A stretch of DNA of 63,224 nucleotides, the filler included, from Octopus bimaculoides (lineage: Eukaryota): NCBI RefSeq assembly GCF_001194135.2. It is 4 parts of 4 records of this genome, joined end to end, with 100 filler letters (N's around TTAATTAATTAA, not from the genome) between each part and the next. Parts side by side here need not be neighbours in the genome. Positions count along the whole stretch, not along the records: positions 1 to 29,790 come from NC_069008.1; 3 more parts are not named here. One strand, given 5' to 3'. The notes under the pieces are model-generated. The model did not search any database, was not told where the DNA came from, and was given only the letters and a program-made list of their open reading frames with translations. Shown piece by piece: positions 2,066 through 24,149 of the stretch. Position 1 is the stretch's first letter. Each line of letters starts with the position of its first letter. Made by a program: the position numbers and the translations under genes.

Positions 2066-2117
2066 CTAATGACAGTCGTCAGCACGAATGACAGCAACGA
2101 GATGTCCTACTTCAGAA
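2066..2117 (+). CDS. Gene A coding exon 1, visible 3' end only (LMTVVSTNDSNEMSYFR); the rest lies in the N gap at 1349-2065
   Basis: Reverse-complement match to the 3' end of gene B exon 1 (IMTVVSTNDSNEISFYK). Ends at the GTAAGT donor 2118-2123 in phase 1, same as B. Confidence 0.8.
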
Positions 2118-2139
2118 GTAAGTGAATTATTATTATTAC

Positions 2140-2206
<67 letters not shown>

Positions 2207-2209
2207 TTG

Positions 2210-3489
2210 TTGTTGTTGTTGTTGTTTTTTCTAATTTCTTCAAATTTTCTTCCGTTTGTCGCCGAGTGTTTTCCGTACACCTGGGGCAGAGAATCTCATT
2301 GTATGCATTCCCAGTTTACACACGCAAATTCACAGGTAAAATATGTATGTAAAAAAAAAAAATTAATGAATGGATGTTGTTTTCACAGCGATAATGCTCT
2401 TCTCAGTACATGAGTTGTTCCAGTTAACACAATTGTTTACACTTCCTGTAAGCCTGGAATCATTTTCAAATGGGTTTCATCTTTGCCATATAGTTTTAAA
2501 TCATCCATATAAAATAGATGGCTTATTTTCCTGTTGTCAATTTTGTAGCCATTCCGTCTTATTCAGTTCACCTGAGAGTGGTATTAGTGCTATGCAGAAA
2601 ATTAGTGGTGAAAGTGAGTCACCTTGGAAAATGCCACAGTTTATACTAATATTGTTTGAGCGCAATACTCCATTAGAATGATATAATTGGAGCTTCGTGT
2701 TCCACAGTGACATACTATACTTTAAAATATCTGAAATCACAGGAGAAATTTTGAAAATGTCCAGCGATTTCAGAATCTACGAATGTGGTGTGTTGTCAAA
2801 GGCATTTTTATAATCAATCCATGAAGAGCTGAGATTTCTGCGATTGTTATGGCNNNNNNNNNNNNNNNNNNNNNNNNNNNNNNNNNNNNNNNNNNNNNNN
2901 NNNNNNNNNNNNNNNNNNNNNNNNNNNNNNNNNNNNNNNNNNNNNNNNNNNNNNNNNNNNNNNNNNNNNNNNNNNNNNNNNNNNNNNNNNNNNNNNNNNN
3001 NNNNNNNNNNNNNNNNNNNNNNNNNNNNNNNNNNNNNNNNNNNNNNNNNNNNNNNNNNNNNNNNNNNNNNNNNNNNNNNNNNNNNNNNNNNNNNNNNNNN
3101 NNNNNNNNNNGACCCAGTTAGAATTTTCTTCAGGTCGAGTAGCCCATCTCACTCAAAAGGTCCCTGAATAGGTTTCTTTAAGGATGTTGAGCAAAACACC
3201 CATGTTTCCAAAGGTGAATTATTCAAACCCCAAAGAATTCCTCTCAACACATGGCTATGATTTTCTCCAACTACTTCTGCTCATGATCAGAGATGCACAT
3301 ATCGTCGGCCACCAAGGGACATGCTCAACTGGTTAAGGTCAAACAACTGACAAGCAAATCTGTGGTATTGAGCAGAATATTTGCTGTATCCCATCTTTTT
3401 ATACCAAGACAAAACAATGTACATGATAACACTTCCAATCAATTAAGATCAGAAGCCATGAGAGCCACTGCCTGGTACTGCATCCGGGC

Positions 3490-3495
<6 letters not shown>
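2210..3495 (-). mobile_element. Internally deleted R4/Dong-like non-LTR retrotransposon in intron 1 of gene A
   Basis: RT motifs on - (GIFQGDSLSPLIFCIALIPLS, then ISHLFYMDDLK) at about 2480-2740. The element is flanked on both sides by (ATT)n tracts. Confidence 0.75.
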
Positions 3496-3560
<65 letters not shown>

Positions 3561-3627
3561 ATCGTCATCGCCATCGTCATCGCCATCGTCATCGCCATCG
3601 TCGTCGTCATCATCATCATCGTCATCG

Positions 3628-3679
<52 letters not shown>

Positions 3680-3939
3680 TATCATTATTATTATTAATAT
3701 TATTATCATTATCATATCTTTTCTTTTTTAAGGCGGTGAGCTGGCAGAATCATTAGCATTCTGAACGAAATGTTTCTAAGTTCAAATTGCGTCGAGGTCG
3801 AGTTTACTTTTCATCCTTTCCGGGTCGATTAAATAAGTACCAGTTGAACACTGGGATCGATGTAATCGACTCATCCCCTCCCCCAAAATTGCTGCCATTG
3901 TGACAAAATTTGAATCCATTCTTATTATTTCATTTTACC

Positions 3940-5130
3940 ACAGATTTTGTTGGAATTCTTGGAGTCTTGCATGCGTAGCGGGCATGCTGCTTCCAGCCCA
4001 TGGTACCATGTTATCCGTCCTTTTCAACTAATACTTTCCGGATTATTCTGACCGCGTCAAGGGAGCAAACCTTTTGTAACAGTTCTACTGGGCACTCTTT
4101 TCTACTTTCCTTTATATTCCTCTTGATGCCTTCTGATACTGTCCCTAAGGACCCCTCAGGGATTGGCACTATCTTCACCTGCTTCATTTTCCATTGCTAG
4201 AATATTTCGTACTTAAGAGTGTTGTATTTATCTATTTTTTTCGCCTTCTTTGTTGATTATTCGCGGATCAAAGGGGCGCGCAACATCAACTGTATGGCAC
4301 ATGTGGTGCATCTTGTCGGCAACTACTTGATCCGCTCTGTTTTGCTCTAGCACCTGATTTGTTTGGTTTTGGAAACCTCAGAGGATTTTGCTTGACTGTG
4401 GTTCCACCATTCTCTCCGATTTGTTCTCATACTACGTCTTACCTCTCTCTAACCCCCAATTTCCGCACAGGTTCCAACATCGCACTTTCGCTACCTAACT
4501 GTGTCGCCAAAATTTGTAGTGGTTTTGGACATGTCTAGGCCATTCGTAAGTGATATGAACCATGGTTTCGTCCACTCTATTACAGATGCGGCACAGCGGT
4601 GCAACTTGCTCATTCCTAAGGTTGACCCTCGAATTCGTGGACAAGCCATGACTATGTGCTGCCAGTATAGTGCTGTCAGTCTCTATTTTCAGTGTCCCTT
4701 TCTTCAGTGTTCCTTTTTTCAGCCAATCCCACTTATTTTTTCCAACAACTTCTATTGTGGTTACATGGAAATTATTGTGGAGTCCCTTGTTGCCTTATGC
4801 TTTTCCATATCATTTTTGTATTTCTTCCTTTATTTTGCCGTTTTTTCTAGGTTTTCAATACTCCCTCAGTCCTAACTGCCACTAGCAAGGTTTCCTTACT
4901 TTAGCATAGGTGTCTCATCAAGCTCCCGAGTTCGATACGTACGCAGTCTTCCACACTTATCAGTGCCCTTCCTCCATTTGCTCTTTTCGTGTAGAGACGA
5001 TCAGTGTCTGAAGGTGGATGATGGACTCCATGCATCATTAGAAGCTTTCTTGTCTTCCTGTCCAACTCCTATCTCTCCTCCTCTGTTCACTTCAATATTC
5101 TAGCACCATACCGAACTACTGCGGCTGCGC
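3940..5130 (-). mobile_element. Degenerate 3' part of an R4/Dong-like LINE (thumb region, CCHC knuckle, RLE endonuclease)
   Basis: Frameshifted translation on - gives DRKTRKLLMMHGVHHP...RLY, WDWLKKGTL, PLCRICN, DVARPFD and VELLQKVC...RIIRKVL. Confidence 0.75.
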
Positions 5131-5220
5131 GTGAGTTCATGGCCGAAATAATGTTTCAGGTATTCAGCTTTGAAGCCACTACTACTACTACTTCTACTAC
5201 TACTATCATTATTATTTCAG

Positions 5221-5399
5221 ACAGCCAATGGATTAAAACATATGCCATATCAATGGGAGCTGGTTCGAAAGTCTATAATTCATTCATGAATATCGAAAGT
5301 CCTTCAACCTGGAATGTGGACAAATGCATTGGTACCTTTTGTCCCAACTTCTGCCGACGTCCCATTCTTGATTTCTGGAACTATCTTCCCATTGATGAG
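5221..5399 (+). CDS. Gene A coding exon 2 (SQWIKTYAISMGAGSKVY...PILDFWNYLPIDE)
   Basis: TTTCAG acceptor ending 5220 and GTATGT donor at 5400. 179 nt, phase 1 to 0, open frame; paralogous to 19994-20172. Confidence 0.9.
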
Positions 5400-6298
5400 G
5401 TATGTAGGCATATGCATACACATACACGCGCACACAAACACATATTGTTATTTTCATAATAACAACAATAATGATTAACAGATATTTAGATCAATTCAAT
5501 TGCTTCTGACATTTTTGACCTGTAAAAATTTTATATTATGAAGGCGAAACCNNNNNNNNNNNNNNNNNNNNNNNNNNNNNNNNNNNNNNNNNNNNNNNNN
5601 NNNNNNNNNNNNNNNNNNNNNNNNNNNNNNNNNNNNNNNNNNNNNNNNNNNNNNNNNNNNNNNNNNNNNNNNNNNNNNNNNNNNNNNNNNNNNNNNNNNN
5701 NNNNNNNNNNNNNNNNNNNNNNNNNNNNNNNNNNNNNNNNNNNNNNNNNNNNNNNNNNNNNNNNNNNNNNNNNNNNNNNNNNNNNNNNNNNNATATATAT
5801 ATGACGTATATGTATATGTGTCTGTAGTGGGGTGTATCGGATCTAAAAAGGAATCGGTCGTTTAGGTATTACGATACGTGTTTCAGTAGCAGAAAATTGC
5901 TTTTATTAACACATTGAGTTATACAACTTGACATACAATGACATGAGATTTTTTGTAAGATTATGAAATGAAAAGTTTACCTTAGATTACCACATCTTGT
6001 GGGGGTGGGGGTCAAACTGTATTAGAGGTTAATTAAGCGATATGTACCAGATAGTATCATGGTAGAATATGAAGTTTTCAAGTGACGGGGAATTAAAAAT
6101 AATATTTGACTCATTTAGATAGAGCAAGGTACCGCTTAGGTCAATGACAAATCAATGTCAATAATTTCGTGTGTTAAAGAAATTCTTTACATTCAAAGCA
6201 ATGATGAAGAAAAATGAGAGTGGACATTATGGCTAACATCCAAGGAAATGTATGTTAAATTATCTCGATCTATTTAAATTTATTCACTTATTTTTTTC

Positions 6299-6341
<43 letters not shown>

Positions 6342-6748
6342 NNNNNNNNNNNNNNNNNNNNNNNNNNNNNNNNNNNNNNNNNNNNNNNNNNNNNNNNNNN
6401 NNNNNNNNNNNNNNNNNNNNNNNNNNNNNNNNNNNNNNNNNNNNNNNNNNNNNNNNNNNNNNNNNNNNNNNNNNNNNNNNNNNNNNNNNNNNNNNNNNNN
6501 NNNNNNNNNNNNNNNNNNNNNNNNNNNNNNNNNNNNNNNNNNNNNNNNNNNNNNNNNNNNNNNNNNNNNNNNNNNNNNNNNNNNNNNNNNNNNNNNNNNN
6601 NNNNNNNNNNNNNNNNNNNNNNNNNNNNNNNNNNNNNNNNNNNNNNNNNNNNNNNNNNNNNNNNNNNNNNNNNNNNNNNNNNNNNNNNNNNNNNNNNNNN
6701 NNNNNNNNNNNNNNNNNNNNNNNNNNNNNNNNNNNNNNNNNNNGTGTG

Positions 6749-6784
<36 letters not shown>

Positions 6785-6807
6785 ATACATGTTCATTTCT
6801 TTTGCAG

Positions 6808-6971
6808 GTTAAACTGGTGATTTATGAAAAACAAACAGCTGTGGTGACTATGATATTTGATGGACGAAATACAACACTTAAAACCTGGTTCTCTCAAAGA
6901 AACTTGAAAAGTTCGCCATGGGTCGATCTAGCTTCAGCCACAAGCCTTCTTTTCTCAGTGGAGGGAGTTTT
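6808..6971 (+). CDS. Gene A coding exon 3 (VKLVIYEKQTAVVTMIFDGRNTT...SSPWVDL...FSVEGV)
   Basis: TTTCTTTTGCAG acceptor and GTATGT donor at 6972. 164 nt, phase 0 to 2; paralogous to 16046-16209. Confidence 0.9.
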
Positions 6972-7814
6972 GTATGTTTCTTTATCTTCTTTGTTGTTTT
7001 GTCTTATTCTGTCATGTAGAGAAATATAATATTAAAAAGCACTTTTCGTAGGCTACGGATATACAGTCTGACACTATACATTTAGACGCGATACTCTGTG
7101 GAGACGAACAACGCATCATATTTCCAGTCTTTCAACAGTATATCTGCATTTGTTATGATATACAGAATGCAAATTTGAACAAATACTGATGTCGTCTGTA
7201 ATGATGAAATATATCCAGACTTCCGGCTAACTACAGTACCGCTGATTTGCTTATCACTATTTTTCTATGTCAAAAGAAGCGAAATTTCTCTTGACCTGCG
7301 GATGCCAACGACTACTTACTACTGATGTGTTTGAATTCATAAGAAATACGGATTTAGCAATTCCGTCGCCATTGCTAGAGGCTGTTTCTCTATTATTAGT
7401 ACATTTCTGTATTTCTAACATTATATATCTAAATGAAATGCTTTCCGGGTGGAGTAAAGCAGTTTCCTGGCTTTCACGTTAAGTGACATGTTTTAAAGTG
7501 ATAAACACGAAAATATTCACCTTAGAATATTGACTTATATCTGTTCGTTTTGAATATTATATTTCATTATATTATTTCTACTGAGCAAAATTTCTTGTAT
7601 GTTTATTTGGCGCTTTGGTAAGATGTTTAACATGGGAAAATATTATCGTTTATAGGTTAGTGGCGTTTTGTGGATTTTTTTACTGAGGTGTGACTCGTGT
7701 GTAGTTTCGCATTTGTTGGCGTATTTACATTTGCACATTTCTACGTGCTTGTATGTTTGTATGTGAGTGTGTGTGCGTATGTGCGTGCGTGTGTATGTAT
7801 ATCTATGTGTATGA

Positions 7815-7870
<56 letters not shown>

Positions 7871-8320
7871 AAATGTATGTGTGTGTGAGTGTAAGACAGA
7901 TCTCGTTGGGAAGAGAATCTATAGATGGCTGTTGGTGATGTCACAGCATATTTTAACACAGACTGCTATAGATCTCTATGTATCATACATAACGTATACT
8001 CATTCACGACAGGCCAGTTACTGCAATATGTGTCCTGCTATAACACCTTGCTCTCACCGGCTGTTGATGGGACGAAGATTTTCTGTCTTTCCGGCATTTA
8101 TTGTGTTCGTAACACAGCAAATCCACATGAGATATTATTCAAGGAAAATATACTATAGTAATTAGTCTATCAACAATGTGAATATACATTAAGTATGATA
8201 CACGGAAGGCAATTTTAAACACTGACTGATTCAGTTTTGTATAGCTGACATATTCATATATTTCATAAATGTTTAGATTTTCATATTCTGAAACCCAACC
8301 AACTTTCATTAACTCCACAG

Positions 8321-8481
8321 CGGAATACGTAGCTTCTATATAGGTAAATTTAAGACATGTTCAAAAATTGGCGGCTGGTTGATTGTCGATGAGATTCCAC
8401 CTTTCTGTTCGTTTCGTTACAAAGGTCATTCTCCTTCAATCCGTTATTCTAATACAAATTTGGAATTCGTATGGAAGAACG
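8321..8481 (+). CDS. Gene A coding exon 4 (GIRSFYIGKFKTCSKIGGWLIVD...PSIRYS...VWKN)
   Basis: AACTCCACAG acceptor and GTAAGT donor at 8482. 161 nt, phase 2 to 1; this frame is not listed in the ORF track. Paralogous to 14994-15154. Confidence 0.9.
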
Positions 8482-8525
8482 GTAAGTGACATTATATCTT
8501 TTCTGGGTGTGTGTGTGCGTGTGTA

Positions 8526-8573
<48 letters not shown>

Positions 8574-8932
8574 TGTGTGTCAGTGTGTGTCTGTGTGTGT
8601 GTGTGTCTATGTATCTGTGTCTCTGTGTGTGTCTGTCTGCCTGTCTGTGTGTGTGTGTGTCTGTGTTTCTCTGTGTGTGTGTGTGTCTGTGTCTGTGTGT
8701 GCGTGCCTGTGTCAGTCTGTGTCTGTGTGTGACTATGAGTGGTAATAGTAGAAGTTATTTTCGTACTTAATGTTCAGCAACCAATCAGGCTTGATTCAGC
8801 TGATTTTATGATTAAAAGCGTTCTGACCGGGAATCGACTGCTATTTCTAGTAATTCGAGCTACCACGTGTAAAGTCTTCCCACGATATATTAGAATTCCT
8901 TTTCTTGTTGATGTTGTTATTGTTACTTCCAG

Positions 8933-8988
8933 GTTATCCATTAGCAGATTCCATGGCCATATTCATCCGCTTGAGGCAGCAGAACTAA
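8933..8988 (+). CDS. Gene A terminal coding exon 5 (GYPLADSMAIFIRLRQQN*)
   Basis: TTACTTCCAG acceptor, phase 1, TAA at 8986-8988, AATAAA 100 nt downstream; paralogous to 14639-14688. Confidence 0.88.
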
Positions 8989-9087
8989 CCTAGCACATAA
9001 TATCCATTGATTCTATTGGTTTCGTTAACCTCCATCCAATCCAGCTGACCACCACTAGTGATCCACATAAGTCACGTCTTGCCTGTT

Positions 9088-9093
9088 AATAAA
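9088..9093 (+). terminator. Polyadenylation signal of gene A
   Basis: AATAAA 100 nt after the stop codon; the same position is conserved in paralog B. Confidence 0.7.
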
Positions 9094-9319
9094 GAATCCA
9101 TATAAATATTGTATCTAGCATCGGTCTTTTGAGTTGTGATTCTCTTTCTCTGCTTTCAGAGACAGAGCTGTTGTTGTTGTTTTTTCCAATTCGCGTGTTT
9201 GTTTGTTTGTGTTCGTGCTTGAGTGCGTATGTGTAGATAGATATCTGAGGTTTTGTCTCTGTGCCGTAAGGAAAAATCTCTCAGCAAATCAAGGAGACCA
9301 AAACAATAATACTAATTGC

Positions 9320-10510
9320 AGAAGGGGAAGTGAAAAATAACCGCCGTTTGGTCAAAACATTCTTATGGTCGGTCGCACCACCTTGAACGGTCACATGGTA
9401 TGCTCCCGATTACGTAACCGACGTTCCACCTTGACCGCTCCACTTTTCTTTCTTGTGTTACAGAGTAAACATGGCCGCTCCACTGGCAATGTGCATCAAG
9501 GAAGAACAGCAACCAGTGACCCGATTTCTCTGGTCTGAATGTGTGTCAGTGGCTTAAATTCATCGCAGGCGTTCAGTACTATACTGGAACAGAGCTTTAC
9601 TGCGCAGAAGTGTGTATCAGTGAAACGGGAAGTTTTAAATCTCTGAACAAGATTGAATTGGATCAAGAAGTTTTAAAATGGCCGAATAAGCGCGAAGTAT
9701 GAGAACAGAGCAAAAGGTCCATCAACCTCTGTCATTACGAGAAGATTTAACAAGTTCGAGAGATAGCTGCTGCAAACGCACGAGTGACTATCGATTGTGC
9801 GGCATGGTTTCTACAAATTAATCATGGCTCTGTGTACGAAATCATCCACTAAAATGCTNNNNNNNNNNNNNNNNNNNNNNNNNNNNNNNNNNNNNNNNNN
9901 NNNNNNNNNNNNNNNNNNNNNNNNNNNNNNNNNNNNNNNNNNNNNNNNNNNNNNNNNNTCTACAAATTAATCATGGCTCTGTGTACGAAATCATCCACTA
10001 AAATGCTTAACTTCCGTAAAATCTATGTGTAATGGGTTCCAATAAAGATTACCGAAGCGCATTAGGGAAATCGAGTGGAGATCCGTCAGAGTTTATTTGA
10101 CAGCTACAATGATGAAAGCAAAGCATTTATGGAGATAGCAGTCACAAGAGATGAGACCTGCGTCCATCATTTTGAGCCAGAATCGAAAAGACAGAATGGA
10201 AACATCCGGAATCGATAGCGAAAAAGTAATTCATGACTGAACCTTCTACGGAAAAAGTGATGCTAACTGTATTTGGGGATGCAAACGAGCCTATACATGA
10301 ACATTGCCTGGAAAAGGGGTCTATTGTCACTAGTGTAGGCTACAATGAAATGGCAGCCAACAAACTGAAACCAGCAATTCGCATCAAACACCAAAGTCTA
10401 TTGTTAAAGTATGAATTATTGTCGGACGACAATGCACGCTCGCATTCGGCCAGCCACACTATTGAAACCATGGAGTCATCAAAATTGTGAGCCACTGGAA
10501 GAAGCACATG
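9320..10510 (+). mobile_element. Mariner (DD34D-type) transposase relic, multiply frameshifted
   Basis: MAAPLAMC.KEEQ N-terminus, RFLWSE, WVP, DETCVHHFEPESKRQ, KVMLTVFGDA, KLKPAIR and DDNARSH (HDNARPH-like). Confidence 0.85.
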
Positions 10511-10991
10511 GAAAATCAAGAAGACTATGGCGAAAAATGAAATAAATATACACAAACATCTTTTGTATTTACTTTTACTGGTCCCAGCTAGAGGCTGCGG
10601 CCATGCTAGAGTACCACCCTTAGTGTGAGGTGTTTTTATTTTACACTAAATTCCAAGCTTTCATCTCCGGCATTATGTCTGGTGAAGTGGCGAGTTAGAC
10701 GGAGTTGTTCATCTTTGTGATCCCTGCTGCCATGTGGGCTCATCTGGTACATTAGATAAAAATTTAACAAATATACCTTGCAGATCTCTGAAATGTTTTG
10801 GTAGAGTGCTGAAAGGATACAGGCCTTTGAAATCTTACAGTGCTAAGTCCTTACACTAGATGGAGAAGATGCGATATTTGGAATCTTGCAATGATGTCCA
10901 AATCGGTAGTTGTAATAGATTGCAATACCAAATGTGGAAAATGGCCTTCCAGGAACACACACACACACACACACACACATACACACACACA

Positions 10992-11025
<34 letters not shown>

Positions 11026-11613
11026 NNNNNNNNNNNNNNNNNNNNNNNNNNNNNNNNNNNNNNNNNNNNNNNNNNNNNNNNNNNNNNNNNNNNNNNNNNN
11101 NNNNNNNNNNNNNNNNNNNNNNNNNNNNNNNNNNNNNNNNNNNNNNNNNNNNNNNNNNNNNNNNNNNNNNNNNNNNNNNNNNNNNNNNNNNNNNNNNNNN
11201 NNNNNNNNNNNNNNNNNNNNNNNNNNNNNNNNNNNNNNNNNNNNNNNNNNNNNNNNNNNNNNNNNNNNNNNNNNNNNNNNNNNNNNNNNNNNNNNNNNNN
11301 NNNNNNNNNNNNNNNNNNNNNNNNNNNNNNNNNNNNNNNNNNNNNNNNNNNNNNNNNNNNNNNNNNNNNNNNNNNNNNNNNNNNNNNNNNNNNNNNNNNN
11401 NNNNNNNNNNNNNNNNNNNNNNNNNNNNNNNNNNNNNNNNNNNNNNNNNNNNNNNNNNNNNNNNNNNNNNNNNNNNNNNNNNNNNNNNNNNNNNNNNNNN
11501 NNNNNNNNNNNNNNNNNNNNNNNNNNNNNNNNNNNNNNNNNNNNNNNNNNNNNNNNNNNNNNGTAAACATACCAACATTGTTTATCAAGCGATATTGGTG
11601 GGCAGGGGCAATC

Positions 11614-11694
<81 letters not shown>

Positions 11695-12539: not shown

Positions 12540-14357
12540 AACAAAACAGTCAGTGTCACGCACAGTGAGTTACGTCTTACTGTCGATCATTTGCCTTTTC
12601 TTTAGATCAACCAGCAAGGAAAAGTGGGAGAGGAAATCTGCCCTACGTATCGGGTACAGTAGATCGGTAACTAAAATACCTCACTGGAAGCATTGTTCGA
12701 GTCGTATATTCAAGGTGAGAGAAATTTCGACATATGTGGTAAAGGGTGATTTGTTGACCGCTTGCAAGATAGTGGCTGAAGGACAAGGTTTTCTGTGCGT
12801 ATATTTGGCTTGCCAGATACTACAGGCAGCTTCTGAGTCAATCAGGAAGCTCCTCTGGGAAATTCATCTTTGGTAAAAATTGCACCACTTGGAGGGATGA
12901 TACCAGAAACAGTGGCCGTACTTACTGCTCCGTTTGGGCGTTTCCCTAGGTATTATTTGAATGAGGTGGTGTGCATTTCCTTGCCTTGGCACCGAAGTTG
13001 GTATGGTACCAACATACCGATCCATTATTGCCGACGTATTGATATATGGATAGAGATTTAGAGCGGGATCGGCATCTTGCATGTAGGACTGTATTCTTTT
13101 CCAAACGAAGGTTGCGGACTTCCGCTACTAAGTCTTCGATTGTTTTTTTTTTTTTCTGTGGCGCGTNNNNNNNNNNNNNNNNNNNNNNNNNNNNNNNNNN
13201 NNNNNNNNNNNNNNNNNNNNNNNNNNNNNNNNNNNNNNNNNNNNNNNNNNNNNNNNNNNNNNNNNNNNNNNNNNNNNNNNNNNNNNNNNNNNNNNNNNNN
13301 NNNNNNNNNNNNNNNNNNNNNNNNNNNNNNNNNNNNNNNNNNNNNNNNNNNNNNNNNNNNNNNNNNNNNNNNNNNNNNNNNNNNNNNNNNNNNNNNNNNN
13401 NNNNNNNNNNNNNNNNNNNNNNNNNNNNNNNNNNNNNNNNNNNNNNNNNNNNNNNNNNNNNNNNNNNNNNNNNNNNNNNNNNNNNNNNNNNNNNNNNNNN
13501 NNNNNNNNNNNNNNNNNNNNNNNNNNNNNNNNNNNNNTTTTCTCCGCTGACAGGGAATTCCGCCGTAGAATCTCGGCTTTATCAGAAGTATAGCTGGCGT
13601 CCATAGGTGGATTTGTAATTATACCCCTGACTTCACTGGGGAGAGCAGGTGGCAAAAGACTTACCAGAAGATGCAAACGCTGCGTTTCGGACGACACATG
13701 GTTTGCTGCAAAGTAGGATTCCATTTTAGCAACCCAACCGGAAACGTCTCCGGTGAAAATAGGCACAGGTGGATGAGAAACAGCAGCTGTGGAACGTGAG
13801 GCCATTGTTACTTGCCGAGTGTGTGAGTCTGGAGAAAGAAATGTCGCTATGATGCTCGGCATTGCCACGTGAGAAATGTTTTGCGTTTCTCCAACGTCGG
13901 ATTCACCACTTTGGTGAGTATATGTGTGTTTCCATTGTTAGGTTGGCGATGTACTGATTAGGTGTCGGCTGCGTGTAAATGAAGAATAAACACACACTAA
14001 ATATAACAATTTTTATTTTGTTGGAGATGCGTTGCAAGATGTTATGGCATTTTGGCATGTGCCGTTTACTGTGAGAGAGGCGTCGCGACACTACGTGTAG
14101 GGGACTGAAGCACAGAAAAAGAGCTAGCAGTCCTAGCTGTGGGCAGTTGACGAGCTGACTGCCCAAAAGGGAAAAGAGAAAGAGCCCTGTCAGTCGGGCT
14201 CTTTACATGCCTTTCACGACTTCCGTTAAGGGCTGCTGTGTTTTGCGCATGCTTCGTGACTGCCCGCTTCGTCCCTTCCGGGCCTTTTATCTTTAGCCCT
14301 GAGAAATGCCAAGGAGGCACGATGAGTATGCTACAGACAAAACGTCAGATATCTACA
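12540..14357 (-). mobile_element. Truncated Ty3/Gypsy LTR retrotransposon: LTR, PBS, gag and protease
   Basis: Gag N-terminal region (VSHPPVPIFTGD...IITNPP...Y...EILRR) at 13550-13810; WYHTNFGAKARKC knuckle at about 12970-13010; protease-like FLIDSEAAC...ADFLSHFSLLVDL at 12590-12850. PBS-like TGGTGAATCCGACGT at 13908-13894 follows a CACCA LTR end. The LTR 5' boundary is approximate. Confidence 0.8.
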
Positions 14358-14524
14358 TACGCACACTCATGCACGCACACACGCACGCACGCACGCACAC
14401 ACACACACGCACGCACACACACACACACACACGTGAACTAGAACATCAACAACAGCTCTGTCTCTGGAGTCAGAGAATGCAAATCACAACTCAAAAGACG
14501 GACTTAGAATATTTACACGGATTC

Positions 14525-14530
14525 TTTATT
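14525..14530 (-). terminator. Polyadenylation signal of gene B
   Basis: TTTATT on + (AATAAA on -), about 110 nt past the stop codon and homologous to 9088-9093. Confidence 0.7.
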
Positions 14531-14638
14531 AACAGGTAACACTTGACCTATTCGGATCATTGGTGGTGGTCAGCTGGATTGGATGGACGTTAACAACAAC
14601 ATCAGTAGTATCAATGGATATCATGTGCTGGGTTAGTT

Positions 14639-14688
14639 CTACTGCCTCAGGCGGATGAATATGGCCAAGGAATCTGCTAATGCATAAC
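14639..14688 (-). CDS. Gene B terminal coding exon 5 (GYALADSLAIFIRLRQ*)
   Basis: TTACTTGCAG acceptor and TAG at 14641-14639. Spliced CDS is 295+179+164+161+50 = 849 nt, or 282 aa, with no internal stop. Confidence 0.88.
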
Positions 14689-14867
14689 CTGCAAGTAACA
14701 GTAACAACATCAACAACAAAAAGAAATTGAAGCAAATCGTGGAAAATCTTTATACGTGGTCATTCGAATTACTAGAAACACCAGCCGAATCTTTAAATCG
14801 TTGAGTGGGAAACATACAGGAGGGTCATGGTCGGAATGCTTTTAATGATAAATCAGTTGAATCAAAG

Positions 14868-14965
<98 letters not shown>

Positions 14966-14993
14966 TACACACACAAAATAAAATATCACTTAC

Positions 14994-15154
14994 CTTTGTT
15001 CCATACGACTTTCTTGTTTTTATGAGAATAACGGATTGAAGGAGAATGAGCTTTGTAACCAAACGAACAGGAAGGTGGAACCTCATCGATAACCAACCAG
15101 CCATTCGCTGTTGGACATTGACCGCTTTTTGCTATATGGAAGCGACGTATTTCA
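14994..15154 (-). CDS. Gene B coding exon 4 (EIRRFHIAKSGQCPTANGWLVID...PSIRYS...VWNK)
   Basis: AACTCCACAG acceptor and GTAAGT donor, 161 nt, phase 2 to 1. Confidence 0.9.
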
Positions 15155-15644
15155 CTGTGGAGTTAATAAAATTTGGTCGGGTTTCAGAATATGAAAATCT
15201 AAACATTTATGAAATATTTCAACATGTCTGCTATATACAATTGAATCGGTTAATATTTAATTATAATAGGCTTCAGTGTATCATGCTTAATGTGTATATA
15301 CACACAGCCATTAAGCTAATTACTGTAGTATTTTCCCCTGAGATAACATAAACTATGGATTTGCTGCGTTACGAACACAATAAATATCAGAGAGACAGGA
15401 AAACTTGTCCCAGCAGCGGCCAGTGGGAGCGAGAGAAGTAATCTCAGGACATACACTGCAGTAACTGGCCCGCCGAGAACGAGTATACGTTATGTATGAT
15501 ACATAGATATCTATACCAGTTTGTGTTAAAATATGCAGTGACATCTCCAACAGCCATCTATAGATACCCTTCATAACGAAATCTGTCTTACACACTCTCA
15601 CACAGAGACATATGCACAAACACCTACACACACACATACACACA

Positions 15645-15700
<56 letters not shown>

Positions 15701-16045
15701 CACACACACACATACATACACACAACACACACAAACGCGTAGAAATGCACAAATCTAAAAACGCAAAGGCGAAAGTAAAGTCGAGGCATACGATTTAGTA
15801 AATAAACCGACTAAACGCCACAAACATATATATGAACGATGATATTTTCCCGTGTTAAGCATCTTAGCAAAGCGCTAAATAAACATGGAATGAATTCTGC
15901 TCCAGAGAAATAATATAATGGAATATAATAATATTTAAAATGAACAAACGCAAGTAAACAAAGTTATAGTATACATTTTAAGGTGAAAATACATTTTGGT
16001 GCAAAAAAAGAAAAATACAACAACATAAAAGATATACAGACATAC

Positions 16046-16209
16046 CCAAGTCCGTTCATTGAGAAATGAAAGTTGGTGGATGAAGCTAGATCGTTCCAGG
16101 GTGAACTTTTCAAGTTTGCATGAGAGAACCAGCTTTCAAGGGTTGTATTTCGTCCATCAAATATTATGGTTACGACAGCAGCTTGTTTTTTATAAATCAC
16201 CAGTTTCAC
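16046..16209 (-). CDS. Gene B coding exon 3 (VKLVIYKKQAAVVTIIFDGRNTTLESWFS...SSPWNDL...FSMNGL)
   Basis: TTCTTTTACAG acceptor and GTATGT donor, 164 nt, phase 0 to 2. Confidence 0.9.
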
Positions 16210-16230
16210 CTGTAAAAGAAATGAGCCTGT

Positions 16231-16271
<41 letters not shown>

Positions 16272-17911
16272 TTGACACACACACATGTATAAGTATATAT
16301 ATGTGTCATATATGTGACATGAACGAAGTTTCACCTGATGTGCATGGATATTACGGATTGTACTGTAATGATACCGGGTATATAGGCTCAGGAGTGGCTG
16401 TGTGGCAGGGTTCAGTCCCACTGTGTGGAACCTTGGGCAAGTATCTTCTACTACAAGCTGGGGTTGACCAAAGCATTGTGAGAGGAGGATTTGGTACATG
16501 GAAACTGAAAGAAGCCCGTCTTATATATATANNNNNNNNNNNNNNNNNNNNNNNNNNNNNNNNNNNNNNNNNNNNNNNNNNNNNNNNNNNNNNNNNNNNN
16601 NNNNNNNNNNNNNNNNNNNNNNNNNNNNNNNNNNNNNNNNNNNNNNNNNNNNNNNNNNNNNNNNNNNNNNNNNNNNNTGTGTGTGTGTGTGTGTGTGTGT
16701 GAGTGTATGTGTGTGTGTACGTGCGTGTGTGTGTATTTGTGTGTCTGTTTTTGCCCCCCACCATCACTTAACAACCGATGTTGGTGTGTTTACGACGGCG
16801 TAAGTTAGCGGTTCGGCAAAAGAGACCGATAAAAAAGTACTAAGCTTACAAAAAACAGGTTGGGGGTCAATTCGTTCAACTAAAGGCAGTGCTCTAGCAT
16901 GGCCACTATCAAATGGCTGAAGCGAATAAAAGAGTAATGTGGACTAAGTTCGTATGGACTATGCGACTCGCGGAACCGCGCGTAGCGACGGATTAAATAC
17001 TTATAAATCCCATTTATGGATTATTATTACTATAACAATGTTTATCCTACTTTGAATCGGAACCATTGGGCGGCAGCCAACACAATGAAATAGCAACTTT
17101 TATACGCGTACACAAAATAGTGTCCCGTGAACGAACTTATAAGTATCTGCGTGAGTGTGTGTGTGCGTGTACGTAAATGTCGAACAATGAGAAATAAGGA
17201 TTCAAAACCGCATTGTTGTTTAAAATTTCTTCATTTGTGTATTAAGGCTACTATTGGTTTCCTTTAAAGATGAATGTCTTAATATGGTAACGACTTTTTA
17301 AGCCGATTACCTGGAGGGAGGGTGGTCGTCTCCATTGTGGATGAAAACACGAAAAATCTCTGAGAGAAATGTTTCGTGATTGACACATCTAGTAAAGAAA
17401 AAGCAATCAAGGGGCGCTACTCTCTGATGATAACTTTTGAGTGATTATCTCCCTTGGACTTGACTTGTGAGGGAAACTACCATGTTGCAAAGTGAATTTG
17501 CTTGCGTTATATCATATTATATTCTTGGTGTATGTGATGTTCTTATGTTTGTGTACTGATGTAGTTCATCAGAATGAAGGGTATGTATCTCTTATGTGCG
17601 GAGTTCATGTATTGGATATATTCAATGTTCACGCTTCAAGAAAGCAACTATCCTGCTGGGATTCGTGGCGTTGGTGGTGGTTCCTTTTTGAAATGTCGGA
17701 ATCTGAAATATTGCGTGTGTATGCAGCGACAGAAATTTCAACCCTAATATTTAAGATGTTATTTGTTGACTGTATGATATTTAACTTCATATATATATAT
17801 ATATATATCAATAATAATAGGACCCCGGGGAGATGTAGTATCCCATATTTTATAATATTTTATATGTATGAATCGTTCTGGATATTGCATCGAAATGTTC
17901 ATAGGTTATTT

Positions 17912-17951
<40 letters not shown>

Positions 17952-18747
17952 NNNNNNNNNNNNNNNNNNNNNNNNNNNNNNNNNNNNNNNNNNNNNNNNN
18001 NNNNNNNNNNNNNNNNNNNNNNNNNNNNNNNNNNNNNNNNNNNNNNNNNNNNNNNNNNNNNNNNNNNNNNNNNNNNNNNNNNNNNNNNNNNNNNNNNNNN
18101 NNNNNNNNNNNNNNNNNNNNNNNNNNNNNNNNNNNNNNNNNNNNNNNNNNNNNNNNNNNNNNNNNNNNNNNNNNNNNNNNNNNNNNNNNNNNNNNNNNNN
18201 NNNNNNNNNNNNNNNNNNNNNNNNNNNNNNNNNNNNNNNNNNNNNNNNNNNNNNNNNNNNNNNNNNNNNNNNNNNNNNNNNNNNNNNNNNNNNNNNNNNN
18301 NNNNNNNNNNNNNNNNNNNNNNNNNNNNNNNNNNNNNNNNNNNNNNNNNNNNNNNNNNNNNNNNNNNNNNNNNNNNNNNNNNNNNNNNNNNNNNNNNNNN
18401 NNNNNNNNNNNNNNNNNNNNNNNNNNNNNNNNNNNNNNNNNNNNNNNNNNNNNNNNNNNNNNNNNNNNNNNNNNNNNNNNNNNNNNNNNNNNNNNNNNNN
18501 NNNNNNNNNNNNNNNNNNNNNNNNNNNNNNNNNNNNNNNNNNNNNNNNNNNNNNNNNNNNNNNNNNNNNNNNNNNNNNNNNNNNNNNNNNNNNNNNNNNN
18601 NNNNNNNNNNNNNNNNNNNNNNNNNNNNNNNNNNNNNNNNNNNNNNNNNNNNNNNNNNNNNNNNNNNNNNNNNNNNNNNNNNNNNNNNNNNNNNNNNNNN
18701 NNNNNNNNNNNNNNNNNNNNNNNNNNNNNNNNNNNNNNNNNNNNNNN

Positions 18748-18787
<40 letters not shown>

Positions 18788-19010
18788 CACTTAGGAGCGA
18801 TGCACGGTTTCAGAATTTATCGACTCAAGTCAAATATCACAAATCCTCCAAGTCCTTGTTAGATTATCCACGTAAGAGAAGACTGGACCGGCTTACATGA
18901 CTGGTATCAAGTCGTATAATTTGTAATAATGAAGTGAAACAAAAATGGTGGTATTTTCAAATCGTGTTGTTTGTGTGTGTTTGCGTTTGTGTATACATAT
19001 GTATATGTCA

Positions 19011-19072
19011 CTAACCCTAACCCTAACCCTAACCCTAACCCTAACCCTAACCCTAACCCTAAGCCTAACCCT
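19011..19072 (+). repeat. Interstitial telomeric-type (CCCTAA)n array
   Basis: About 10 units of CCCTAA with one GCCTAA variant. Confidence 0.9.
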
Positions 19073-19993
19073 ACTACCTCACAAATGGCTTTCTTGGGTT
19101 TATGTCCCGATAACTTAGCGGCTCGGTCAAAACACTGGATACCAAAGGATTTGTTCAACTAATCCCCTTTAAGGCGGTCCCCTAACACGGCCGCTGTGCA
19201 ATGACTTAAACAGGTAGAAGAACTTCTTCCCCGCAAGATGTGTAGCCAGCTATCCATTAGAGAAAACATTGAAACGTTGAGTTTAGTAGTTAGACATACA
19301 AGACATAACACACCCGACGAAATGTCTTCATAATTCCATTATGTAGAATTTAGGGCGCCAACAACAGATCCAAACAGTCTTGAAATTTGACAATAAATTA
19401 TGGTTGTCCCCAGGTATAGCCGTCTGTTACTTCTTCATTTTCTGTTGAAGTTCTCCATGTTGCTTTCGATCTGTCACGGTTCTGTTTCCCTTGAGATATC
19501 CACTGTTTGGTTTGCCTGGTAATATCAGAAAGAGGTTTCTATTCGGTGTGTCCTAGCTAACCTCAGTTCCTGCACTTGATCTGGGTTCCGATAGGTTTCT
19601 GGCTCACCTGTTCCCATAAGGTTTTGTTTGTTACTCAGTCTTGCATTCTCACAAGAAGAATGACAAAGTAATACAACTTTAAATTCAATTTTTGCCGAGC
19701 TCAATAAAACTTTTACCAATCATGTATCATAAGCTGATTTCATCGATTTTGTTTCCCATTTACTCGTCAAAACCCAAAAGATTTTTTTGTCTATGACAAT
19801 TTTTTCTTATTACTACGGTTTGCCGCGGATAAAATTCTATTCAACACGGTTTAGCCTTCCTCATATAAAATTTTTACAGGTCAAAAATGTCAGAAGCAAT
19901 TGAATTGATCTAAATATATGTTAATCATTATTGTTGTTATTATGAAAATAACAATATGTGTTTGTGTATGCGTGTATGTGTATGAATACATAC

Positions 19994-20172
19994 CTCATCA
20001 ATTGGAAGATAGTTCCAGAAATCAAGAATGGGATGTCGGAAGAAGTTGGGACAAAAGTTCCCTTTGCATTTGACCACTTTCCAGGTTGAAGGACTTTCGA
20101 TATTCATGAATGAATTATAGACTTTCGAACGAGCTCCCATTGATATGGCATATGTTTTAATCCATTGGCTGT
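19994..20172 (-). CDS. Gene B coding exon 2
   Basis: TTTCAG acceptor and GTATGT donor, 179 nt. Only 10 nt differences from gene A exon 2. Confidence 0.9.
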
Positions 20173-20187
20173 CTGAAATAATAATGA

Positions 20188-20241
<54 letters not shown>

Positions 20242-20294
20242 CTTCAAAGCTGAATACCTGAAACATAATTTCGGCCATGAACTCACGCGCAGCC

Positions 20295-20492
20295 ACAGTA
20301 GTTTGGTATGGTGCTAGAATATTGAAGTGAACAGAGGAGGAGAGATAGGAGTTGGACAGGAAGACAAGAAAGCTTCTAATGATGCATGGAGTCCATCATC
20401 CACGTGCAGACACTGATCGTCTCTACACGAAGAGGGCAAATGGAGGAAGGGCGATGATAAGTGTGGAAGACTACGTACGTATCGAACTTCGT
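20295..20492 (+). mobile_element. Truncated copy of the same R4/Dong-like LINE fragment in gene B intron 1
   Basis: LDRKTRKLLMMHGVHHPRADTDRLYTKRANGGR; near-identical inverted match to about 4930-5130. Confidence 0.75.
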
Positions 20493-20604
20493 TTTTTAAG
20501 CATCATCATTATAGATATTTATACTCCTGTGAAATTAACGAATCAACTTGTAAATAAATGAAAACCTCGAATCCATCACTGTAGGCACACACATACGCAC
20601 ACTT

Positions 20605-20645
<41 letters not shown>

Positions 20646-21939
20646 CAAACAGTCGCATATCTCTATATGTATGTATGTACCCACACGTGTCTAATTTTCT
20701 AATTTTCTGTAATAGGTTGATGGTAATAAAAATTTTTGAGGTTTACAGATATGAAAGCTTTGAAAGTTCGTGGATATCAAAGTTTGAAAGTTAATGGGCG
20801 TGTAGAAGGTAATTCTATTTAAATTTATTATTACCTGTATGTTTTAATGAATATTTTCTCATTAAAATCCATACTATAATAATGGATACGAAGCAGAATA
20901 TATAGTGGTGTTTCAAAATAATTATGTGCTCTGAAAACTCCGTAAATGTGCTACGCTCTTATTTTGATAAATTTGAAGTCATTTGCTTAAACACACATTT
21001 CCTTAGTTTTGTAACTATGAAAACTCCGTTATGAGTATTGATGTTACTAGCCAGAGACGAGAAGCATCCAGATCTCATCAACAGTATAGGCTGATCATTA
21101 CTTATAGCTATTATTTGATTTTTGTCATGGATTTATCCTGTGTGTATAAAATATTTAATAAAGTTGTATAATACATAGATATATACAAATATATATATNN
21201 NNNNNNNNNNNNNNNNNNNNNNNNNNNNNNNNNNNNNNNNNNNNNNNNNNNNNNNNNNNNNNNNNNNNNNNNNNNNNNNNNNNNNNNNNNNNNNNNNNNN
21301 NNNNNNNNNNNNNNNNNNNNNNNNNNNNNNNNNNNNNNNNNNNNNNNNNNNNNNNNNNNNNNNNNNNNNNNNNNNNNNNNNNNNNNNNNNNNNNNNNNNN
21401 NNNNNNNNNNNGATATATACATGGGAGAGTATTGTAGTTCGCTTGAAGCATTGTGTATTGTTTGTAAAGAATAAAAAGTTTTGAATGGTACAACAATGCA
21501 CTGTAATACAGACAATGAGCTATATACCTGTTCTAATTTAGTCATCCATAGTCTGATATAATATTTCAGAATAATATTCCTTTTTCAGATATTCTTAGAT
21601 TGAGTTGCTGCTATAATCGGTTTTCCAACGGCTTTACTTTTTTATTATTTTTTTTTTTTTGAAACGTCTCAGCAGTGGTCTCATGAAGCTCCTTCCAGAA
21701 TTCCTCATGAGAATTGCGTGAGGTCGGCCATGTCTCTATCTCTTGTGTGCTGGTACCTCCGTAGTGCTGCTTCTAATTTATGTATTATACGTGCAGCTTC
21801 CTTTTTTCCCTTCTTTTTTATCTCTTTGGTTTTTTTTTTTGGTTTTTTTTTGTTATAAACTACAAATGGGCATATTATCACAAATGAACCTACACACATC
21901 CAGATGTAGCTAAATGATATATTGATTACCAACTTCCCT

Positions 21940-22627
21940 CCTGTTGTTCATTTCGTGTCCTAGTCTGTGTATGAGTATAGCTTCCTTAATTCTTAGATTA
22001 CCCAAATTTCTTTCCTCGGCCTCAATTGTGACTGTTATGCTTTTGTCGGTGTTCCGGCATCTGTCTAGATGTTTTCTGAAGGAGGAGGCTCTCGCGTTCA
22101 GATGTTCTTTGATGCGGACGTGTAACGGTCNNNNNNNNNNTGTTTTCTGAAGGAGGAGGCTCTCGCGTTCAGATGTTCTTTGATGCGGACGTGTAACGGT
22201 CTTGTTGTGCTACCCACATAGAACTTGTTGCATTTGTTACATTGTATTCTATGCACAGCATTTACCCGTTGGCATAAATCTGTGTCACGGATGGGACAAT
22301 TTAATTTGCATTGATTGCTGTCCCTTATTCGTTTCTTTGCGAGGTGTCCTCTCAGAGAGGGGCTGGAGTGGGCTAGTTGTATGTCTAGCTTTCTCTTCTT
22401 ATGGCTCTTCAGATGGCTGTAGTTATCCTCTCGCTAAAACGGGGTATTTTAAGGAAGCATCTGTTGCTGGGTTTTCTATGTGTTCGGCGTGCTGGTCGTC
22501 TTGGGTACTTAAGCCGATTTACAATGGATCTAGGGTACCCGTTGGTTTTCAATATATCTAGGAAGCGTGTGGAGTGGGTCACCCTGTCCTCCATTCTGCT
22601 GCACTTATCCTAGATGTGTGCAAGTTC
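21940..22627 (-). mobile_element. Penelope-like element 3' portion with GIY-YIG endonuclease
   Basis: On -: ILKTNGYPRSIV, then YRIQCNKCNKFYVGSTTRPLHVRIKEH...LRIKEAILI. Confidence 0.85.
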
Positions 22628-23103
22628 NNNNNNNNNNNNNNNNNNNNNNNNNNNNNNNNNNNNNNNNNNNNNNNNNNNNNNNNNNNNNNNNNNNNNNNNN
22701 NNNNNNNNNNNNNNNNNNNNNNNNNNNNNNNNNNNNNNNNNNNNNNNNNNNNNNNNNNNNNNNNNNNNNNNNNNNNNNNNNNNNNNNNNNNNNNNNNNNN
22801 NNNNNNNNNNNNNNNNNNNNNNNNNNNNNNNNNNNNNNNNNNNNNNNNNNNNNNNNNNNNNNNNNNNNNNNNNNNNNNNNNNNNNNNNNNNNNNNNNNNN
22901 NNNNNNNNNNNNNNNNNNNNNNNNNNNNNNNNNNNNNNNNNNNNNNNNNNNNNNNNNNNNNNNNNNNNNNNNNNNNNNNNNNNNNNNNNNNNNNNNNNNN
23001 NNNNNNNNNNNNNNNNNNNNNNNNNNNNNNNNNNNNNNNNNNNNNNNNNNNNNNNNNNNNNNNNNNNNNNNNNNNNNNNNNNNNNNNNNNNNNNNCCTGT
23101 AAA

Positions 23104-23125
23104 ATACTACTACTACTACTACTAC

Positions 23126-23216
<91 letters not shown>

Positions 23217-23271
23217 AAGAAGAAGAAGAAGAAGAAGAAGAAGAAGAAGAAGAAGAAGAAGAAGAAGAAGA
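23104..23271 (+). repeat. Compound (TAC)n(TAA)n(GAA)n microsatellite next to the exon 1 donor of gene B
   Basis: Read directly from the sequence. Confidence 0.95.
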
Positions 23272-23284
23272 ATGCTTCACTTAC

Positions 23285-23579
23285 ATTTATAGAAGGAAAT
23301 CTCGTTGCTGTCATTCGTGCTGACGACTGTCATTATATTTTTCGGTGAGTAATTCTTACAAACATGGCTGACTTTGTGGTAAGTGAAAAATTGCGATTGG
23401 CTCCTCTGAGAGAGTGCGGTGCAGTCGAATAGATTTCGTGTTGAAGAGAATTGTTCTGCTGGAGATGGCTGAAGGTAAGCATAAGAATAACCAGGACCCA
23501 AAGATTTGTAATAGGCCTCAAGTTCCTGATCTGAGGTAACAACCAGAATTGTTGTAAGGGTTAACAGCAGCACTTCCAT
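23285..23579 (-). CDS. Gene B coding exon 1: signal peptide plus PAN/apple-like module (MEVLLLTLTTILVVTS-DQELEAYY...DCTAL...FFTY...VCKNY...ISFYK)
   Basis: ATG at 23579-23577 in a good context (GCTACAATGG) followed by a hydrophobic N-terminus. GTAAGT donor at 23284-23279; 295 nt, ending in phase 1. The PAN-like call rests on the C..., F-x-Y...C spacing and is an inference. Confidence 0.85.
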
Positions 23580-24149
23580 TGTAGCTAGACGGGTAAAATG
23601 AAACTGAGACATTCTTGGGTCTAAGATCACCAGAGGAAGAAAGAAGGGGGAAAGAAATGTCATGAAAGAGAGAAAGAAAGGAGCAGGGAGATATTGGAGA
23701 AGATTCGGCAAAGGGTCAAGGCGAAATTTAATATATAAAGAGAGAACGGAGAAGAGAAAGACAGAGAGGGCAGGAAAGAGTTAGAGAGTATCTGAGAGAA
23801 ATCCTGAAAAAGAAGAAAGAGACACACAATGAGAAGAGGGAAAACGTCTGTGTGTGAGAAGAAGGATGTTTGGAAGATAAAACGAAGAGGAATAAATTAC
23901 AATTTAAAACAGAAAATTTCAAATAAATTAGGGTCATTAGCAAAGCTGCAAGTCCTGGGTATGATTTTAAACTGTATCTTTTACGGGGGGCCCTGGTTGG
24001 GGATTTCCAATGTTTTGAGGAGTTTGGAATCGCTTCTTAGCCACTGCTGTTTGAAAGTCTACAGTGACCAGGAGTAGAAGTACTTGTGAATGTCCCAGCT
24101 GTGGGTTAATTAGTAATTCAGTCGATCGGATGGCGCTCATTAGACATAC

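Follow-up and report, generated by a model that had tools for sequence, protein, structure and literature searches.

A tail-to-tail gene pair in Octopus bimaculoides encodes predicted secreted proteins with a PAN-like module and an unnamed C-terminal domain possibly related to fibrinogen domains

What do two similar genes on opposite strands of an octopus chromosome encode, and are they intact? We addressed this question in a stretch of 63,224 nucleotides (nt) from Octopus bimaculoides (assembly GCF_001194135.2; the whole stretch is hereafter called the window), the first part of which, positions 1-29790, is AT-rich, microsatellite-laden DNA with 14 runs of N. A sequence-only reading of the window had proposed a hidden pair of tail-to-tail genes for a secreted protein composed of a PAN-like module and a second domain that it could not name. 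The two genes, LOC106882933 (gene A, plus strand) and LOC128251051 (gene B, minus strand), are intact, recently duplicated inverted paralogues, arranged tail-to-tail, with five exons each. By analogy with known systems, we somewhat favour the view that their products belong to a group of small secreted two-domain proteins which expanded in octopods and which may have a soluble, lectin-like recognition role.

Two inverted paralogues of five exons

The layout of the locus was read by six-frame motif searches and a blastn self-comparison, in which the two gene copies appear as an inverted segmental duplication, with a per-segment identity between the copies of 77-96%. The exons of the two genes and the two copies of the duplication are as follows.

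Gene A (LOC106882933)
2066..2117, plus strand: readable 3' end of exon 1 (…LMTVVSTNDSNEMSYFR), located by tblastn and translation
5221..5399, plus strand: exon 2, 179 nt, acceptor tttcag, donor gtatgt, 100% match to P0023
6808..6971, plus strand: exon 3, 164 nt, bearing the NTT sequon
8321..8481, plus strand: exon 4, 161 nt, variable segment with the C...GW...C motif
8933..8988, plus strand: coding part of exon 5, TAA stop included

Gene B (LOC128251051)
23285..23612, minus strand: coding part of exon 1, ATG at 23612-23610 (MSQFHFTRLAT...), 295 nt if counted from the ATG at 23579
19994..20172, minus strand: exon 2, 179 nt; P0219 begins within this exon, at Met 110 in the 282-residue numbering
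16046..16209, minus strand: exon 3, 164 nt
14994..15154, minus strand: exon 4, 161 nt, variable segment
14639..14688, minus strand: coding part of exon 5, 50 nt, TAG stop included

Inverted duplication (blastn)
4929..9234: copy 1, blocks 4929-5551, 6750-7010, 7542-8535 and 8831-9234
14393..20488, reversed: copy 2, blocks 20488-19848, 16267-16009, 15946-14942 and 14791-14393, in the pairing order of copy 1

Splicing confirmed the arrangement that had been proposed from the sequence, that is, two tail-to-tail paralogues in which all junctions are GT...AG, the intron phases are 1,0,2,1 and the internal exons measure 179, 164 and 161 nt in both genes. The AATAAA signals were recovered as well, 3' of the stop codon in each gene (9088-9093 in gene A and 14530-14525 in gene B); the RefSeq gene ranges end at window position 8988 for gene A and start at 14639 for gene B. 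The locus matches 13,628,220-13,655,106 of CM046628.1 in GCA_001194135.2 (L001) base for base, with an offset of 7899 and the same gaps. The genes are not hidden, as had been claimed: they are already catalogued as LOC106882933/A0A0L8FJH6 (A) and LOC128251051 (B), and the public models of both are truncated at the N terminus, the PAN exon being missing because of assembly gaps.

In gene A, no more than the final 52 nt of exon 1 can be read, followed by a phase-1 donor (GTAAGT) at 2118. As this end directly follows the assembly gap 1349-2065, the rest of the exon, about 240 nt, must lie inside that gap, beyond the range covered by the earlier reading, and the description of gene A as a completely readable five-exon gene does not hold. 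Exon 1 is not recoverable from the public chromosome assembly either, where L001 has exactly the same gaps. The N runs other than 1349-2065 are all intronic or intergenic when the gap list is set against the exon table. The product of gene A is a 100% match to P0023 in a local BLASTP search (XP_014789264.1, LOC106882933, Octopus bimaculoides). Its RefSeq model has 191 amino acids and begins at the internal Met of ...NEMSYFR, and the UniProt model A0A0L8FJH6 has 202 amino acids and begins with MTVVSTNDS. The UniProt model P0218 opens with MTVVSTNDSNEMSYFRN and uses the 2117/5221 junction; P0218 and P0023 span exons 1-2-3-4-5 across the gaps, with junctions identical to ours.

Gene B yields an uninterrupted open reading frame (ORF) of 282 amino acids with six cysteines from the ATG at 23579, which reproduces the product deduced from the sequence. 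An in-frame ATG lies 33 nt further upstream, at 23612, and gives 293 amino acids. This is probably the actual start, since the homologues begin 11 residues earlier (MSQF/MFQF); the frame proposed before is thus open, with its start probably set too far downstream. The 293-residue protein has cysteines at 64, 85, 145, 150, 237 and 253. Of its three sequons (NYSP87, NDS100 and NTT190), NDS and NTT also occur in gene A, as had been noted, and NYSP had been missed. Residues 13-26 form its sole strongly hydrophobic stretch, followed by VTS/DQ. We read this N-terminus as signal-peptide-like, in keeping with the hydrophobic segment recognized earlier.

The public record of gene B, XP_052833323.1 (173 amino acids), equals residues 110-282 of the 282-residue product, its start being an internal Met in exon 2, and the public model P0219 spans exons 2-5 with the same junctions. 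Exon 1 of gene B is contained in no database protein, and the best full-length matches are paralogues with at most 73% identity. The junction between exons 1 and 2 crosses three gaps and is the only one that rests on homology alone: its phase fits, and the spliced product is colinear with paralogues of 293-296 amino acids, with nothing missing or extra. A third support is the nominal length of the intron at this junction, which at 3112 nt in gene B comes close to the 3103 nt in gene A, N runs of estimated length included in both. What is new in these models is therefore a 5' exon for LOC128251051, predicted to encode a signal peptide and a PAN module, and the finding that the equivalent exon of LOC106882933 is lost to an assembly gap.

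A degenerate PAN module in exon 1

Both structure models are based on a 71% identical paralogue from O. sinensis, P0001, and not on the spliced protein of the window, a circumstance that tells against carrying them over without reserve. The AlphaFold2 model of P0001 had a mean predicted local distance difference test score (pLDDT) of 78.6 and a predicted template modelling score (pTM) of 0.70. Foldseek matched it to the PAN domains of the hepatocyte growth factor (HGF) N-domain, plasminogen and AMA1 with a probability of 0.97-1.00. The matches (1gmn, 3hmr, 3hms, 4a5t and AMA1 chains) had a root mean square deviation (rmsd) of 2.3-3.0 Å over 84-95 columns, and the template modelling (TM) score, normalized to the target, was 0.66-0.69 for the HGF N domain. 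By profile, PAN_3 and PAN_1 were each found in 3 of 24 octopod members, with best E values of 0.0052 and 0.065, respectively. All of these Pfam matches fell below the gathering score, and the gene B protein itself had no Pfam PAN match.

The exon-1 module appears to share the PAN fold, in which a helix packs against a curved sheet, with the HGF N domain, the plasminogen PAp domain, the apple domains of factor XI and prekallikrein, and apicomplexan AMA1 and MIC proteins. Unlike these, which have four to six core cysteines, the octopus module has two (positions 64 and 85 in gene B), and PAN_1 and PAN_3 are matched below threshold. The earlier reading of exon 1 as signal peptide plus degenerate PAN/apple module is, as modelled, a fair description, with a Foldseek probability of 1.0 and an rmsd of 2.6-3.0 Å over about 85 residues.

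A C-terminal domain with weak direct similarity to fibrinogen domains

The remainder of the protein, encoded by exons 2-5, is a domain of about 185 residues (hereafter the C-domain), which in octopus and other mollusc proteins begins directly after the PAN module, at QWIKTYAIS. Modelled by itself, the C-domain reached a pLDDT of 92.3 and a pTM of 0.89. About 30 of its top 50 Foldseek matches in the PDB were fibrinogen-related and came from five families, namely fibrinogen beta/gamma, ANGPTL3/6, ficolin-1/2, FGL1 and MFAP4; jelly-roll and galectin folds scored far below them. A nearly invariant C-x2-D-x-GW-x(8-12)-C motif stands at a place like that of fibrinogen NCA...GGWW...C, whose late disulfide brackets the ligand and calcium site, a correspondence drawn by eye and backed by no significant alignment. 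Profile searches against Pfam rejected Fibrinogen_C (PF00147), C1q and galectin as identities of the C-domain; ApeC, considered as a domain common in amphioxus and molluscs, had no match at E≤1.

Several direct comparisons weigh against an affinity with fibrinogen. The Foldseek matches are weak (E 0.04-0.5, probability ≤0.63, TM score 0.3-0.41, rmsd about 9 Å), and for this reason a shared fibrinogen fold is not established by them. No Pfam family was assigned to the C-domain at E≤1 in gene B, 24 octopod members and 30 diverse C-domains, and searches of PDB sequences with an octopod profile and with a diverse 30-sequence profile returned nothing at E≤10. Profile-profile comparison by hhalign found no relation of the C-domain to four canonical fibrinogen domains (probability 0.1%), each of which had matched its PDB chain over the full length, nor to the intelectins ITLN1, XEEL and 7e1e (probability 0.2-0.7%), the first of these queries being checked against a PDB alignment and the other two read from it. 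No DxDxD calcium site was found in the C-domain, and no fibrinogen A-subdomain (YCDMxxxGGGWT with its disulfide) in the octopus and other mollusc proteins. As a control, the intelectins, whose fold is described as fibrinogen-like, were aligned to the canonical fibrinogen domains by hhalign, and they did so for the first 43 residues only.

Bridging proteins tie the C-domain to the fibrinogen A-subdomain

In four proteins (P0096, P0106, P0087 and P0093), a fibrinogen A-subdomain (SC.DI...G...G.Y.IDP.....V.CDMT.DGGGWT) runs unbroken into each C-domain, and it likewise runs into the C-domain of the coral proteins P0153 and P0231 (Pocillopora, Oculina). The hidden Markov model (HMM) of the C-domain starts at the GGWT strand in these bridging proteins. 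Pfam Fibrinogen_C is matched in them at profile positions 2-56 and NCBIfam GGGWT_bact with an E value of 1.7e-21, and phmmer matched fibrinogen, MFAP4, angiopoietin and intelectin chains through the prefix only. When extended bacterial units were compared with ficolin, fibrinogen gamma, angiopoietin-2 and tenascin, hhalign gave a probability of 98% over 61 residues, a match that extends to the first strand of the C-domain and the VYD.W helix. P0153 and P0231 match the C-domain HMM with E values of 1e-47 to 1e-59.

Another coral protein, P0234 (Pocillopora, 'MFAP4-like'), opens with the same PAN-EGF-A prefix as P0153 and runs on into a canonical fibrinogen domain; where the two proteins align, over 42% of P0153, their identity is 47%. 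Corals hold two parallel architectures, one with PAN-EGF and a canonical fibrinogen domain and the other with PAN-EGF, the A-subdomain and the C-domain. The coral PAN-EGF-fibrinogen proteins share the N-terminal PAN module of the octopus proteins, and P0153 and P0231 share the C-domain too. Corals retain EGF and the A-subdomain between the PAN module and the C-domain, whereas the octopus and other mollusc proteins are without both.

From these architectures we infer a fibrinogen-superfamily origin of the C-domain. It is likely a very divergent version of the B and P parts of the fibrinogen-related domain (FReD), EGF and the A-subdomain having likely been lost in molluscs. The earlier suggestion of a possibly fibrinogen-like domain is supported, though indirectly, by the bridging architectures and the Foldseek ranking, and the direct profile comparisons go against it. 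It also counts against a common origin that an unrelated module could have displaced the B/P parts behind the A-subdomain. What is new here is the link that the bridging architectures, rather than direct similarity, provide between the fibrinogen superfamily and this unnamed domain of about 185 residues, which is extracellular, widespread and covered by neither Pfam nor the PDB.

A fuller version of this history can be put forward only tentatively: the C-domain may be an unrecognized branch of the fibrinogen superfamily that predates the cnidarian-bilaterian split and also occurs in Myxococcota, was stripped of its A-subdomain in molluscs and serves octopods as a germline recognition repertoire. 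If true, this branch would amount to a germline-encoded repertoire of soluble receptors comparable to that of snail FREPs, with dozens of clustered octopod genes that diversify in the exon-4 loop.

Rather less probable, in our view, is that the C-domain represents a separate fold without kinship to fibrinogen domains, which in some lineages came to adjoin the A-subdomain by domain shuffling, the octopus proteins then being components of matrix, mucus or adhesives. Consistent with this, profile-profile comparison gave no signal to fibrinogen domains or intelectins, the structural superpositions are as poor as described above, and the C-domain occurs in mosaics of the extracellular matrix type with TSP1, ADAMTS, kringle and F5/8C domains. 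Nevertheless, the C-domain always starts exactly at the GGGWT strand, which in fibrinogen domains belongs to the central sheet and is no linker, and its length and terminal strand (ADxxAIFxx versus xEMKIRP) are comparable to those of the canonical domain in P0234. Moreover, the five fibrinogen families dominate the Foldseek list, with jelly-roll and galectin folds far lower, and the lack of a profile-profile signal is matched by intelectins, which hhalign likewise fails to align past residue 43.

The family is expanded and clustered in octopods

A search of 5.8 billion proteins retrieved 53 clusters, all octopod (O. sinensis, O. bimaculoides, O. vulgaris and Argonauta hians), all named 'uncharacterized' and most about 295 amino acids long. 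Many are gathered on a single chromosome-scale sequence in each species: at least 11 share one 18.6-Mb sequence in O. bimaculoides and at least 14 one 15.1-Mb sequence in O. sinensis, a species in which family members are nested on both strands. At the O. sinensis locus of P0001, RefSeq isoform X1 of LOC118768579 extends over about 100 kb, within which two further members are nested on both strands. This isoform probably chains exons of neighbouring paralogues, so family counts should be taken with caution.

Among 1.84 billion cluster representatives searched with a profile, 1,105 matched at E≤1e-3, 664 of them at E≤1e-10, in agreement with the earlier statement that the unnamed domain is common among predicted mollusc and amphioxus proteins. 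The C-domain occurs in corals, molluscs, echinoderms, amphioxus and Myxococcota. The whole architecture of PAN and C-domain, at about 290-310 amino acids, is present in Aplysia, Mytilus, Crassostrea and Nucella, and in the sea star Acanthaster at 351 amino acids. The C-domain alone, often in multiple copies, is found in mosaic extracellular proteins of amphioxus, crinoid and mollusc, with TSP1, kringle, ADAMTS, F5/8C, C-type lectin, WSC and PAN as partners, and also in giant Myxococcota proteins. Among the bridging proteins, P0087 is from Myxococcota and P0096, P0106 and P0093 are bacterial-type by architecture; giant bacterial-type FG-GAP/MopE proteins carry two to three tandem copies of the A-subdomain plus C-domain. 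The occurrence in both bacteria and animals raises the question of transfer between them.

Three family proteins bear the UniRef name 'Apple domain-containing', and literature searches on the LOC and UniProt identifiers and on octopus together with PAN or apple found nothing relevant. The family is known, though uncharacterized; it is expanded in octopods and fast-evolving.

Divergence of the two copies

Over exons 2-5, the identity between the two genes is 85.6% at the nucleotide level and 73% at the amino acid level. The pair differs by about 0.18 synonymous substitutions per site (dS). The ratio of nonsynonymous to synonymous rates (dN/dS) differs among exons, being 1.8 in exon 4 and 0.55-0.72 in the others. 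Exon 4 is also more diverged than its own intron (77% versus 82.7% identity), and across the octopod family it has the highest column entropy (1.83 versus 0.94-1.16 bits). The same segment holds the nearly invariant C...D.GW...C pair. Two figures temper the picture of a diversifying surface: the overall dN/dS is 0.84-0.89, which relaxed constraint would equally give, and the exon-4 excess is a nominal one, from 53 codons.

Improbably, one or both copies might be young pseudogenes decaying by neutral drift, with frames open by chance. The overall dN/dS would suit this explanation, as would the partial public models and the observation that conservation of the exons does not exceed that of the introns beside them (exon 2, 94.4% versus 95-96% in its flanks; exon 3, 82% versus 81-83%). 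On the other hand, when the same 79 substitutions were placed neutrally in simulations, the frame stayed open in only 3.3% of copies. The exons are free of indels over 554 bp, whereas the rate in the aligned non-coding flanks, with 23 events in about 1.7 kb, would predict about 7. In addition, each of the eight splice sites that can be read is retained, as are the two stop regions and the two AATAAA signals, the invariant residues of the family (Cys pairs, W, RRF and GW) stand in both copies, and assembly gaps account for the partial public models. The pattern of substitutions and indels indicates that the reading frame is protected in this gene pair.

Divergence is uneven along the duplication: the introns around exon 2 are about 95-96% identical (4929-5551 against 20488-19848) and those around exons 3-5 about 80-83% (7542-8535 against 15946-14942). 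Because of this unevenness, we suggest that the exon-2 region underwent gene conversion or that the duplicates are of mosaic origin.

A possible role in recognition

The predicted protein would begin with a cleavable signal peptide, followed by the cysteine-poor PAN/apple module of exon 1 and the C-domain of exons 2-5, and would be secreted as an N-glycosylated, two-domain product. Secretion, binding of a glycan or other ligand, and an immune or recognition role seem most likely, the last by analogy with ficolins, tachylectins, intelectins and snail FREPs. In this scheme, the fibrinogen-like domain would use its variable exon-4 surface to bind a surface ligand such as a glycan, with the disulfide-bracketed segment (C...D.GW...C) in contact with the ligand. 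The PAN module would provide a second contact to protein or glycan, or mediate oligomerization, and the family as a whole would form a clustered, diversifying recognition repertoire.

The likeness to FReD lectins (ficolins, tachylectin-5, FIBCD1, MFAP4 and snail FREPs) lies in a C-terminal globular domain of about 180-220 residues, predicted to be secreted here; in a first strand that is homologous in the bridging relatives (GGGWT...VFxx...W); in a putative late disulfide that brackets a G-W motif, and a final hydrophobic strand; and in an N-terminal interaction module combined with lineage-specific expansion and variability of the FREP kind. Unlike FReDs, the octopus proteins lack the A-subdomain, YCDxxxGGGWT, a Fibrinogen_C match, DxDxD and GFG/EFWLG, and are negative in profile-profile comparison; their partner domain is PAN, whereas FReDs are joined to collagen, a coiled coil or the immunoglobulin superfamily. 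Intelectins, or X-type lectins (ITLN1, XEEL), offer an analogous case, as these secreted, glycan-binding proteins resemble fibrinogen domains in sequence only up to GGGWT. They keep the A-subdomain, unlike the octopus proteins, and none is among the top 50 Foldseek matches of the C-domain.

We give little credence to the idea that the family consists of secreted effectors of the salivary, venom or ink type with the exon-4 surface aimed at prey molecules, for although small secreted proteins, lineage-specific tandem expansion and one fast-evolving surface are hallmarks of venom families too, orthologues of the same size with PAN and C-domain occur in non-venomous bivalves, gastropods and a sea star, and the ancestral role was therefore not venom.

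None of these results is surprising in kind. By analogy, the family is a candidate for a lineage-expanded recognition repertoire, in animals whose innate immunity and surface chemistry are poorly characterized.

Repeats and mobile element remnants

Long (TG/CA)n and (ATT/AAT)n microsatellites lie at 2126-2230, 3487-3715, 6744-6784, 8530-8730, 14942-14975, 16233-16267 and 23101-23280. They adjoin exons 3 and 4 in both copies and border most of the assembly gaps, which is probably why the region is poorly assembled. The 10-N gap at 22131-22140 has the same approximately 50 nt on either side, which suggests an artefact of assembly.

The window was also scanned for Rfam families and tRNAs, with no match. 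ORF pieces at 28777-29506 (plus strand) show Tc1-like motifs by eye, ESRFAVFSDSGRVWAWRR and DGAPCHTAKK...SPDI, which are unconfirmed, with no Pfam match at E≤0.1. In intron 1 of gene B, a remnant ORF at 22101-22609 (minus strand) carries a GIY-YIG endonuclease motif (Pfam PF01541, E 0.001) and is read here as a fragment of a Penelope-like retroelement. Between the two 3' ends of the gene pair, at 10066-10487 (plus strand), lies a stop-interrupted fragment of a mariner-type transposase (Pfam PF01359, Transposase_1, E 1e-4).

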